A stretch of DNA of 64,000 nt, from positions 14,818,001 to 14,882,000 of the forward strand of contig OY740815.1 of assembly GCA_963514005.1 (NCBI GenBank), in the 5' to 3' direction. Position numbers and translations under genes: made by a program. Source of the DNA: Raja brachyura (Eukaryota). Numbering within the stretch: position 1 is the stretch's first letter; every line of letters begins with the position of its first letter. Shown in pieces: positions 3,547 to 41,900 of this stretch. Under the pieces are notes generated by a model, which was not told the DNA's origin, did no database searches, and was given only the letters and a program-made list of their open reading frames with translations.

Positions 3547-3687
3547 GGGGTGGGAGATTGCAACCTTCATGTGGTCCGCCCTGTTTCGAGGAATGCAATC
3601 AACCCGGCGTGCACAATCAAATAATATCAAATAGAACAAGTTGTCCTAGAACTTTAGGCTGGGCACGCCATATGCAAGAAGAAGAAG
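3547..3687 (+). mobile_element. ~141-nt HDV-ribozyme-headed short retroposon, copy A (catalytic C changed to G)
   Basis: Starts GGGGTGGGAGATTGCA, ends (GAA)n; TSD gattcagcatggt / gattcagaattgt. Confidence 0.8.
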
Positions 3688-4799
3688 ATTCAGAATTGTA
3701 TGTAGGTCAATCTGCCTCTGCCGATGGGCTCTAGTGTGTTTGAGGGTGGATGGGAAAGAGGAATAACAGGAACCTAATGCCCAGTTTGGAATGGTCGCGC
3801 TAAATGGAGTAACAGTAGGACAACGGATATTTCATTCATTGCATGGAGAAACCTATCTGGCAGATATGATATTCGGTGCTGTTACGCATAGGACTGGATC
3901 TATGATCATTTTACACGATCCTCTACAAAAAGGGCACACTAATTTAAGTTTTGTTTTACCAGAAATTTTAGACACTCAAGAAATATTACCTTACAGTTTG
4001 CGAATGATACAAATAAATTACTGTTGACTTTTAAAGAGATTACGTGACTGTTTTGTCTGCTCCAATAATGTATTTTGATAACTTTAACTGCCAATAGTCA
4101 GCTATCCAAACTACTATAAATCAATGTAACCACTAACTTAAACATGACAGAAACACTCCATTGAATTAGAGCTAAATGGAGGCTTTGAAAACGTTGCCTA
4201 AGCATTACAAGTGAATAGTTTCCTAATTTCCGCTGCTTTTTTCCATGCCTATTGTCCCTCTGTGTATTCTCCATTGACAAGATGTAGTTCACACAGCCCC
4301 TCCAGCTGCTCAACAAGAATAAGAAGGCTTGTGGCACTGAAACCTGCTTCTTCATGACACTGGAAACGCCCAGAAGGAACAAGGGGGCAAAATAGACATT
4401 GATTAATCCTTTTCGAGAACAGTTTGCACTGCCACAAAGAACAGAACGCTGAAAAAATAGCCTCTGTTCAGACAAAAGGCCAGTGTGAATCTTGATCAGG
4501 GCTGGGAGAGGGTGGGAAAGATGGCAAAAGTGTAGCAGCACCTAGGAGGGTGGAAGACAGGTTGGTGGGTGATAGCTGGAATCAGATGGGGAGAGATAGA
4601 TGGATGGGGCCTGATTTCGTTTTTTAGCTTTGTTTAGTTTAGAGATACAGCGCGGAAACAGACCCTTTGGCCCATCAAGTCCTTGCCGACCTTGGGTTTC
4701 CTCCCACATCCCAAAGACACATTGGCTTTGTAGGTCAACTTGTCCCTAATGTGCAGGGAGTGGGTGAGGAAAGTGGGATAACAGAACTTGTGTGAATGG

Positions 4800-38900: not shown

Positions 38901-41900
38901 AACATAAAGCCTGCCCTCCGCTGCTCTTTAAAACACTGCCAGCTGATCTTTTCCCATCCATTCAGAGAACAGCTGGATATTGGTTTAACATGTCATCTGA
39001 AAGGCAGCATGAAGCAAAATGCTGAAGGAACTCAATGGGTCAGGCAGCATCTGTGGAAGCAGAAGCATTATTGATGTTTCGGGGTGAGTCCCTGCAATAG
39101 GAACCGAGTTCTTCCACTGGTTTGTCTTTCACTCGAGATTCCAGTCTCAGGTCTTCAGATGAAAGACACTTTCTCCAATGTTGCAACATTCCTTCGCTAC
39201 CCGACTTTGACGCAGAGACAACAACCTGGCTACTCAACACCCGGCTTGAGATCTAACTATTCCTTTGGTTTATGTTTCATTCGCAAGAAGAAGACTACCT
39301 GACTGAAGTGTCAGCCTGGATTTTGTGCGCATGTTGCTGTGACAATGGACTGCACTCGTCCAAAATTTACCAAAAGCCCTGCTTGCATATCAAAATTAGA
39401 TGAAACATTTCCTGTATAGCAGAAACACGAAGCTATAGTTGATCACAAAAGCAATTTGAAACCCAGTATCATTGTAAAAATGTAAGAAAAGAAACTGCAG
39501 ATGCTGGTTTCTACCAAAGATAGACACGGGGGCGTAGCAGTAGAGCTACTGACTTATAGAGCTAGAGACCCGGGTTCGATCCTGAGTACGGGTGCTGTCT
39601 GTACGGAGTTTGTACGTTCTCTCCGTGACGTGCGTGTGTGTTCTCCGGGTGATTCTATTGTCTATTAGCTTTGGTTTCCTCCCACAATCCAAAGATGTAC
39701 AGGTTTGCAGGTTAATTGGTTTGTATAAATGTAAAACTGTCTCCAGTGTGCATAGGGTGGTGTTAATGTGCAAGGGTCGCTGGTCGGTACGGACTCGGTG
39801 GGCCGAAGGGCCTGCTTCCGCACTGTATCTCTAAACTAAACTGAACTAAGCAAAATGCTGGAGTAACTCAGCAAATCAGGCATCATCTCTGGAGAAAATG
39901 CGTAGGTGGTGTTTCGAGTCGGGATCCTTAATCAAACTTCTTCAGCCTGAAGGGTTCCGACCCGAAACGTCAACCCATCCATTTTCTCCAGAGATGATGC
40001 CTGACTCACTGAGTCGCCGCATTTTGTGTCTATCATTGCAAAAAATACTATAGTCGTCTCCTGAGCAGGTAGATTACTGTTTTGACTAGAACCTTTACTT
40101 GAGAACACCAAGACTCTCTGGAAGGGTCTCGACCAGAAACGTCACCCATTCCTTCTCTCCAGATATGCTGGCTGTCCCGCTGAGTTAGTCCAGCATTTTG
40201 TGTCTATCTTCGAAACGTTGGTCTTTTCAAAAAGCGATTGTCATTAACCACTGAAAAATTATCCTAGAAATAGTCATTGTATTAATGTTGCCATTAGTTT
40301 AGACTAGTTTAGATATAGCATTGTCCACTCCGACCAGCGATCGCCCATTCACACACCGTTCTACACACCTTACGCACTAGGCACAATGTACAGAGTCCAA
40401 TTACCCTACTAACCCAAAGCTCTATGGGATGTGGGAGGAAACCGGAGCATCCAGAGGAAACCCACACGGCCTCAGGGAGAACGTGCAGACTCCACACAGA
40501 CAGCATCAGGGGTCAGGATTGAACCTGGGTCACTGGCGCTGTGAGACAGCGACTCTAACAGCTGTGCCACTGTGCCATTCGAACCAACTACTTTTTCTGA
40601 TATGTCCCAGACTCTGTCCTGAAACCCACCTATGAATCGTCCAAACAATAAAGTGCTGGAGGAGCTCAGAGGGTCAAGTAGCATCTGTGGAGGGAAATAG
40701 ACTGGCAAAGTTTCTGGTCAGGATCCTTCTTTAACTTTGACCTGAAACGTCGCCTGTCCATACCATTCCAGACCTCCGAGTTCCTTTGGCACTTTGTTTT
40801 TTGTTCAAGATTGCAGCTTCTGCAGTCTCTTCTGTTCCATGTGTATTCTCCATATACTTATGGCAAAACACTATTCTCACTCAGGCCTACCTTTAGAGTA
40901 TGATATCTCTCATTCTGGAGTATATTTCCAACTTCACGACAAGTTCCATCTTCAAGGATTTCCTGCAGCAAAGAATAAGGAGACTTTTCTTCATTTCTTG
41001 CAAATAGCCAGAACAGCAACTCTCAATCTTGACATTTTCTAATCTTAATTTTTCGTCTGGAAAGTAATTTCATTTTTCTGCATCAACATTAAGATTTAAG
41101 TGACTTCTTCTTCTTGCATATGGCGTGCACAGCCTAAAGTTGTAGGACAACTTGTTCTATTTGATGTTATTTGATTGTGCACGCCACGTTGATTGCATTC
41201 GTCGAAACAGGGCGGACCACGTGAAGGTTGCAATCTTCCACCCCACTTAGGTGACTGCAATGCAAGTACTGGTCCATATAATTAGCAGTTATTCTGCTGG
41301 ATATCCAAGGAATGTGACAGACCATAGGAATCATATCATGCCATTACCTTAATCACCTTTCTGGAATGGACGCCGAGACTGGGAATCCCTTGAAGGTCTT
41401 CCATTTTGGTCACAGTGTACGGCAAAGACTTTAGAATTGAAGATGCTCTTGAGAATGCCAAGTATCGCCCTTCACTCTCACTTAACTCTGCACTTTCAGC
41501 CAGAACCTTCAATGCTTCCTGAAGATGAAGACAAAAGATTAATCTCAATCCATTTTATAATGGTAAAATATATATAAAACATATAAAATTCTTAAGGGAT
41601 TGGACAGGCTAGGTGCAGGGAAAATGTTCCCGATGTTGAGGGAGTCCAGAAGCAGGGGTCACAGTTTAGAATAAGGGGTAGGCCATTTAGGACTGAGATG
41701 AGGAAAAACGTTTTCACCCAGAGAGCTGTGAATCTGTGGAAATCTCTGCCACAGAAGGCAGTGGAGGCCAATTCACTGGAGGTATTCAAGAGAGAGTTAG
41801 ATTTAGCTCTTGGGGCTAAATGAATGAAGGGATATGGGGAAAAAGCAGGAACGGGGTACTGATTCTGGATGTTGCCATGATCATTTTGAATGGCAGTGCT

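Follow-up and report, generated by a model that had tools for sequence, protein, structure and literature searches.

The 64,000-nt stretch of the Raja brachyura genome analyzed here (assembly GCA_963514005.1, contig OY740815.1, forward-strand positions 14,818,001 to 14,882,000; the window, below) is without any N and carries, on its minus strand, exons of POLM and of a second gene that we take to be NUDCD3. Dispersed in and around these genes are four full-length copies of a 141-nt repeat, here called copies A to D, all of which start at the same base (G1). Their organization points to a non-autonomous retroposon headed by 54 nt that are predicted to fold into a minimal self-cleaving ribozyme of the class that resembles the one in hepatitis delta virus (HDV-like).

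Copies A (3547 to 3687) and C (29150 to 29290) are on the plus strand, and copies B (18931 to 19071) and D (41104 to 41244) are on the minus strand. Because the NUDCD3 exons are on the minus strand, copy A is antisense within an intron of that gene; copy B is intergenic, between NUDCD3 and POLM; copy C runs antisense to POLM; and copy D has the sense orientation inside a POLM intron. Copy D is nearest to the consensus (2.8% divergence, 4 differences), followed by copy A (3.5%), copy B (4.3%), and the most diverged, copy C (7.1%, 10 differences). Used as probes with up to 3 mismatches allowed, 28 nt of the head and 32 nt of the tail of the element each match these four places alone, against 0.00 matches expected. 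A profile built from the copies and run with nhmmer recovers each of them with an E value of ~10^-50 and finds no fifth copy, no fragment, and no partial match to either of the two modules of the element (nt 1 to 54 and nt 55 to 141) across the 64-kb window.

Target-site duplications (TSDs) of 10 to 14 bp bracket every copy; they abut G1 in all four cases and are unrelated in sequence between copies. The TSDs read ATTCAGcAtgGT and ATTCAGaAttGT for copy A (3535 to 3546 and 3688 to 3699), ATcAaAAATT and ATtAcAAATT for copy C (29140 to 29149 and 29291 to 29300), and, for copy D on the minus strand, TCACCTAAGT on the 5' side (41245 to 41254) and TCACTTAAAT on the 3' side (41094 to 41103), which pair as TCACcTAAgT and TCACtTAAaT; each of these three pairs has two mismatches. 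The TSD of copy B (19072 to 19084 and 18917 to 18930) is perfect over 13 to 14 bp, ATGTCTCTTTGTG(G). An earlier reading of this DNA (the original prediction) had proposed the shared 5' start with adjoining TSDs, and this is borne out in all four copies, with a TSD range that extends to 14 bp rather than 13 bp. Its coordinates hold for copies A, B, and C, but copy D, which it ended at 41106, ends at 41104 once the shared terminal GAAGAAGAAG is included. The (GAA)n tail that it described is not a variable microsatellite: the 3' end GCAAGAAGAAGAAG is fixed and common to all four copies, with an identical (GAA)3G terminus. In copy D this terminus is AUGCAAGAAGAAGAAG (41104 to 41119, minus strand), presumably the priming end, and the version in copy C is GGAGAAGAAG. 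Other (GAA)3 sites within the window are unrelated to the element.

Copies occur dispersed on the two strands, between unrelated flanks. The element has a polarity, ending in a purine-rich 3' terminus, and none of the four copies has terminal inverted repeats. Uniform ends, TSDs, and the lack of inverted repeats are hallmarks of target-primed retroposition. With its variable TSDs and defined 3' end, the element thus shows the full set of features of a retroposon without long terminal repeats (non-LTR) that inserts by target-primed reverse transcription, and we regard its status as a retroposon as virtually certain.

The head of the element is predicted to be a minimal HDV-like ribozyme of the CPEB3 type. 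In copy D it occupies 41191 to 41244 on the minus strand, with cleavage predicted between 41245 and 41244; the corresponding parts of the other copies are 3547 to 3600 (copy A), 19018 to 19071 (copy B), and 29150 to 29203 (copy C). The predicted fold is a nested double pseudoknot composed of P1 (nt 1 to 7 with 30 to 36; 7 bp, including a G1·U36 wobble), P2 (nt 10 to 16 with 48 to 54; 7 bp), P3 (nt 17 to 19 with 27 to 29; 3 bp), and P1.1 (C22-G37, plus U21·U38). These helices would be connected by J1/2 (nt 8 and 9), by L3 (U20 to U26, UUCACGU, with a U20·G25 pair inside), by a remnant of P4 that is a 5- to 6-nt linker (nt 38 or 39 to 43), and by J4/2 (C44-G45-A46-A47), in which C44, at window position 41201, is the putative catalytic base. 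In both the consensus and copy D, all 18 pairs (7 in P1, 7 in P2, 3 in P3, and 1 in P1.1) are standard. Over the four copies, standard pairs fill 98.6% of the 72 pair cells, compared with 24 to 44% when the partners are slid by 1 to 3 columns, so that every helix of the HDV topology originally proposed (P1, P2, P3, and P1.1, with J4/2) is found. Both the consensus and copy D have the HDV-like signature, comprising G1·U36, a C-N-R-A J4/2 (here C44-G-A-A), and U20/G25, and a double change in copy C, G2-C35 to A2-U35, amounts to one compensatory pair in P1, which confirms what had been noted there.

The chance of meeting such a motif was estimated with a strict descriptor, which specified G1, a fully paired 7-bp P1, a P2 of 5 bp or more, a P3 of 3 bp, a 7- to 8-nt L3 that starts with U and includes a C, a G following P1, and a J4/2 of the form C-N-R-A. 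In the window the descriptor finds copy D alone, and it returns 0.01 matches per simulated 64-kb window. The start of the ribozyme motif coincides with the first base of a mobile element that was defined independently of it.

Covariance-model scans against 4,227 Rfam families, with models built without this sequence, point in the same direction. With the 64-nt head as the query, three matches were obtained, all to the HDV family: CPEB3_ribozyme (RF00622; 15.4 bits, E = 0.035, full model), HDV-F-prausnitzii (RF02682; 14.9 bits, E = 0.43), and HDV_ribozyme (RF00094; 14.5 bits, E = 2.1). The head alignments run from G1 to the 3' strand of P2. When 251 nt around copy D were scanned, HDV-F-prausnitzii was the single match, with its whole model placed on 41244 to 41191, which is exactly nt 1 to 54. 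Rfam indicated no small-RNA head other than these HDV-family matches, and ARAGORN found no tRNA-like sequence in the window, in keeping with the original prediction that a tRNA head is lacking. The best matches to the A box and the B box of an RNA polymerase III (pol III) promoter have 3 mismatches each, and 58% of shuffled sequences do as well or better. These searches thus gave no sign of the tRNA, 7SL, 5S, or small nuclear RNA head or of the internal pol III promoter of a classical short interspersed nuclear element (SINE). The exclusively HDV-like Rfam matches, the descriptor result, and the lack of any other head together support the view, already advanced in that prediction, of a non-autonomous retroposon with a putative minimal HDV-like ribozyme at its head.

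The closest counterpart among known ribozymes is that of CPEB3, with which we compared the element by means of the consensus printed by cmscan and the residue numbering in PMC4836649 and bioRxiv 10.1101/2022.09.22.508989. The CPEB3 ribozyme has G1·U36; an L3 of U20-U21-C22-A23-C24-G25-U26 with a metal-binding U20·G25 pair; a P1.1 of C22-G37 plus U21·U38; no J1.1/4; and a 4-nt J4/2 that opens with the catalytic C (PMC4836649; bioRxiv 10.1101/2022.09.22.508989). The core letters of the element are identical (L3 UUCACGU, G37-U38, J4/2 CGAA, and G1·U36), and positions 1 to 38 are in the same register, with a 7-bp P1, a 3-bp P3, and no J1.1/4 in both. In contrast, the sequences of P2 and P3 are entirely different, as is that of part of P1, and yet these helices pair, and the 18-nt P4 of CPEB3 corresponds to the short linker of the element. 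The CPEB3 ribozyme, reported from mammals only (PMC8233481), is single-copy and fixed in one gene, whereas the element is a dispersed mobile family in a cartilaginous fish, although copy D, like the CPEB3 ribozyme, has the sense orientation within an intron. With respect to membership in RF00622, the element has the core sequence but neither the position in a CPEB3 intron nor the conserved P4 hairpin.

Two further comparisons bear on the architecture of the head. The bacterial ribozyme of F. prausnitzii shares the P3 of the element (ACC/GGU), its L3 (UCUACGU) is nearly identical, and the L3 motif YYACGU is common to both. In addition, minimal HDV-like ribozymes that lack P4 form a class of established activity (PMC10879173), which provides a precedent for the architecture predicted here. 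Members of this class from metagenomes and the theta ribozymes of gut phages resemble the head of the element in their length of ~50 to 60 nt, their nested double pseudoknot, and their lack of P4 (PMC10879173). They differ in their microbiome or phage origin and in the involvement of some in tRNA maturation, and none has been described at the head of a eukaryotic retroposon.

The second module consists of a long hairpin followed by the fixed 3' end. Nucleotides 58 to 128 fold with a z score of -4.85, and 0 of 200 shuffled sequences fold as well. In copy D this domain (41120 to 41187, minus strand) has a 12-bp outer stem, GUGGCGUGCACA/UGUGCACGCCAU, around a 7-bp inner hairpin; the stem that the original prediction had placed here is real but longer than the 10 bp given there. 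The hairpin is presumed to be the recognition element for the reverse transcriptase of a partner long interspersed nuclear element (LINE). Because no such partner was found in the window, this role of the 3' module is one that we infer.

Many fragments of a CR1-like LINE lie in the window, at 5492 to 5815 (+), 9387 to 10298 (-), 28005 to 28388 (-), 31271 to 31675 (+), 42808 to 43191 (-), and 47536 to 47865 (-); they contain C-terminal open reading frames (ORFs) with a common ending, and the four whose 3' ends were compared terminate in TTCTATG repeats. This family, the sole LINE family examined in the window, was rejected as the partner because such 3' ends are unlike that of the element. What seems to be the 3' region of a CR1-like LINE also contains an 18-bp minisatellite (TGGGCATGTTGGGCGGTG, ~79 copies at 97% identity, 22687 to 24093), which gives rise to long spurious ORFs in all frames.

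The POLM intron that hosts copy D (40963 to 41346, minus strand) is 384 nt long, has GT..AG boundaries, and consists of the element over 141 of its 384 nt. It is flanked by an upstream exon at 41347 to 41517 and a downstream exon at 40891 to 40962, and the translation of the two exons matches the 8-kDa domain of the Pol X family. RNA-type contigs of two public sequencing runs (X19 and X20) cover 41347 to 41517 exactly and thus represent a spliced transcript. Intronic CPEB3 ribozymes coexist with splicing, and the spliced contigs on the adjacent exon suggest that the ribozyme of copy D, if active, is slow enough, or its exons tethered enough, for splicing to proceed, as in CPEB3. Just downstream of the POLM exon, a contig from a related species (run X10) skips 108 nt (40765 to 40872), which marks an indel. 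The ORFs at 8151 to 8549 and ~14306 to 14749 on the minus strand are presumably N-terminal exons of NUDCD3, judged by the human protein, and a position of NUDCD3 beside POLM would match the arrangement at human 7p13. Exon 1 lies within a low-complexity stretch that is very rich in GC and in proline (~13900 to 14900).

Public sequencing data were available as contigs of four runs placed on 38200 to 44199. Summed contig depth, which is not a copy number, reaches ~10^6 over the element against ~5 to 12 in its unique flanks in run X1 and ~3 × 10^6 against ~25 to 30 in run X10. These values suggest a family of ~10^5 copies, as an order of magnitude, which agrees with 4 copies per 64 kb. Contigs of run X10, from a related species at roughly 97 to 98% identity as judged from shared words, run into copy D from both flanks. 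Copy D is therefore present in that species, and its insertion is older than the species split. Other repeats near copy D, at 38600 to 38800, 39400 to 40200, 41600 to 42000, and 42800 to 43200, have higher summed depths (10^6 to 10^7) and probably represent the SINE families that dominate in this genome; the loose-end consensus of one of them is AAAATGCTGGAGTAACTCAGCGGGTCAGGC.

Relatives of the element were also sought elsewhere. When open frame 3 of the element was used as a protein query, one ENA protein, P0001 (101 amino acids, from a contig of 12,624 nt), proved to contain a diverged copy in which the head is conserved, CpG-type changes occur, the body is frameshifted and has an indel, and the tail ends in PYTRER. 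This sequence shows that at least one further public assembly contains the family or a sister subfamily. The further protein matches from a search of representatives were low-complexity repeat proteins only and were judged spurious. Exact-pattern DNA scans of metagenome and prokaryote contig collections gave 0 matches, and an alignment-based search for related loci gave 52 pattern matches with no relative among them.

Taken together, these features suggest a mechanism in which the two modules, a minimal P4-less CPEB3-type ribozyme (nt 1 to 54) and a long hairpin with a fixed end (nt 55 to 141), would act in succession. The host polymerase would read through a copy in any transcribed region, and the ribozyme would fold cotranscriptionally and cut just 5' of G1, leaving a defined 5'-OH and making a promoter of its own unnecessary. 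The reverse transcriptase of an endonuclease-type LINE would then bind the 3' hairpin and the terminal GAA repeats, nick the target with a stagger of 10 to 14 bp, and copy the RNA to G1 by target-primed reverse transcription, so that the new copy would be flanked by TSDs that abut G1. Catalysis, read-through transcription, and dependence on a LINE are steps that we infer. We consider it quite likely that the ribozyme was functional in source copies, and the mechanism as a whole, in which a non-autonomous retroposon is released by cleavage at its own first base, is in our view the probable one.

Retroelements capped by a ribozyme have been found mainly in insects, trypanosomes, and other invertebrates. 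Their ribozymes are larger than the one predicted here: those of R2, L1Tc, baggins, and RTE elements are 77 to ~184 nt long and have a P4, whereas the element has 54 nt and resides in a cartilaginous fish. The likeness lies in the strategy. HDV-like ribozymes at the 5' ends of R2, L1Tc/NARTc, baggins, and RTE elements are well established (PMC6765202), and in these elements and in the short internally deleted elements (SIDEs) of R2 the ribozyme, at the exact 5' end, frees the RNA from a cotranscript (PMC6765202, PMC3414825, and PMC3383444). The Sm-alpha SINE-like elements of schistosomes and animal retrozymes are likewise short, high-copy, non-autonomous retroelements with a self-cleaving ribozyme (PMC6765202). 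Their ribozymes, however, are of the hammerhead class, and they use transcription by pol III or RNA intermediates that are circular and are arranged in tandem, whereas copies of the element are single and dispersed, each with one 5' HDV-like ribozyme. In the full-text literature we found no HDV-like ribozyme retroposon described from cartilaginous fishes or other vertebrates, although an earlier Repbase or Dfam annotation of the element is possible.

Several observations weigh against a ribozyme-released retroposon. At gathering thresholds, Rfam gave 0 matches in the whole window, and the best scores fall 20 to 35 bits short of these thresholds (15.4 versus 35 for CPEB3, 14.9 versus 44 for HDV-F-prausnitzii, and 14.5 versus 50 for HDV), with models that leave the P2 and P1.1 pseudoknots unscored and penalize a near-absent P4. 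Copy B yields no Rfam match even at E values up to 10. Covariation among the four near-identical copies is not significant, as 123 of 500 shuffles equal the observed value, and P4 is reduced to a mere linker in a sequence whose ribozyme activity is predicted. Inactivating mutations of the core are present in three of the four copies: the catalytic C44 is changed to G, and C24 to U, in copy A; U20 is changed to A in copy B, with loss of the U20·G25 wobble; and C19 is changed to A in copy C, which breaks a P3 pair. Copy D is the sole copy with an intact core, so that the functional case rests on the consensus and copy D. The occurrence of YYACGU in the bacterial F. prausnitzii ribozyme means that the identity of the core with that of CPEB3 may reflect constraint rather than descent. 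Finally, no LINE that shares either end of the element was found in the 64-kb window, either with nhmmer or by comparison with the CR1-like tails. On the other hand, divergence is alike in nt 1 to 54 (4.6%) and nt 55 to 141 (4.3%), as would be expected if the copies are dead, neutrally decaying products of an active source.

The origin of the element could be specified further if it were an internally deleted derivative, of the SIDE type, of a full-length LINE with the same 5'-untranslated-region ribozyme and the same 3' end. The ribozyme would in that case belong to the LINE instead of being a SINE head in its own right. This reading refines the ribozyme-released retroposon rather than competing with it, and we hold it as a reasonable possibility, somewhat short of an even chance. 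Non-autonomous SIDEs of R2 are described in PMC3414825, and in R2 SIDEs and NARTc such derivatives retain the ribozyme and the 3' end (PMC3414825 and PMC3383444). The element would fit this pattern, as it has two modules with nothing between them and a precise, fixed 3' end that is typical of stringent 3'-end recognition. The missing LINE in the window and the different CR1-like tails speak against such a derivation, as does the low copy number of SIDEs, in contrast to the ~10^5 copies and SINE-like abundance of the element. SIDEs are also specific to ribosomal DNA, whereas the insertions of the element are dispersed and have 10- to 14-bp TSDs.

A real retroposon could alternatively bear a dead relic or a chance look-alike of an HDV-like ribozyme at its head, with the 5' end set by a transcription start (a pol III promoter or an internal pol II promoter in the first ~50 nt) or by complete reverse transcription of a short, defined RNA. 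The low Rfam scores, the undetected copy B, the near loss of P4, and the nonsignificant covariation would all suit this explanation. A promoter role is conceivable given that the first 77 nt of L1Tc serve as both promoter and ribozyme (PMC3383444). An intact sense copy in the short POLM intron would also be more easily tolerated if its ribozyme were slow or dead, although the coexistence of intronic CPEB3 ribozymes with splicing lessens the force of this argument. However, 13 of 13 unpaired core nucleotides and the register of every helix match a ribozyme that is proven experimentally, and a chance resemblance would have to satisfy a descriptor that matches 0.01 times per window and to begin at the very first base of the element. 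The shuffled-sequence result for the A and B boxes and the lack of a small-RNA head in ARAGORN and Rfam likewise argue against a pol III origin of the 5' end. We therefore consider a nonfunctional head unlikely. The idea that the copies derive from a DNA transposon (a miniature inverted-repeat transposable element) or from segmental or tandem duplication, which their short length and flanking direct repeats might invite, has next to no probability and was rejected, given the lack of terminal inverted repeats, the variable and mutually unrelated TSDs, the polarity and purine-rich 3' terminus, and the dispersal on both strands between unrelated flanks.

The resemblance to CPEB3 also raises the question of common ancestry with a ribozyme-released retroposon. 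The CPEB3-type ribozyme might be an old vertebrate retroposon module, with the element or its LINE parent as a true relative and outgroup of the mammalian CPEB3 ribozyme, which would be a domesticated insertion. On the same reading, the family would be the first vertebrate repeat on the scale of SINEs to spread without a promoter of its own, and every sense intronic copy, such as that in POLM intron 4, would be both a new source and a potential cutter of pre-mRNA. We regard this as a rather doubtful conjecture at present.

Overall, if the proposed mechanism is correct, a 54-nt P4-less ribozyme on a 141-nt vertebrate element would be the most compact form of the ribozyme-capped strategy, and a promoterless element would have been able to reach ~10^5 copies. 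Tens of thousands of potential intronic self-cleaving sites, among them the intact sense copy in POLM, could shape pre-mRNA processing and bias the orientation of insertions. A retroposon origin of the CPEB3 ribozyme would likewise become testable.

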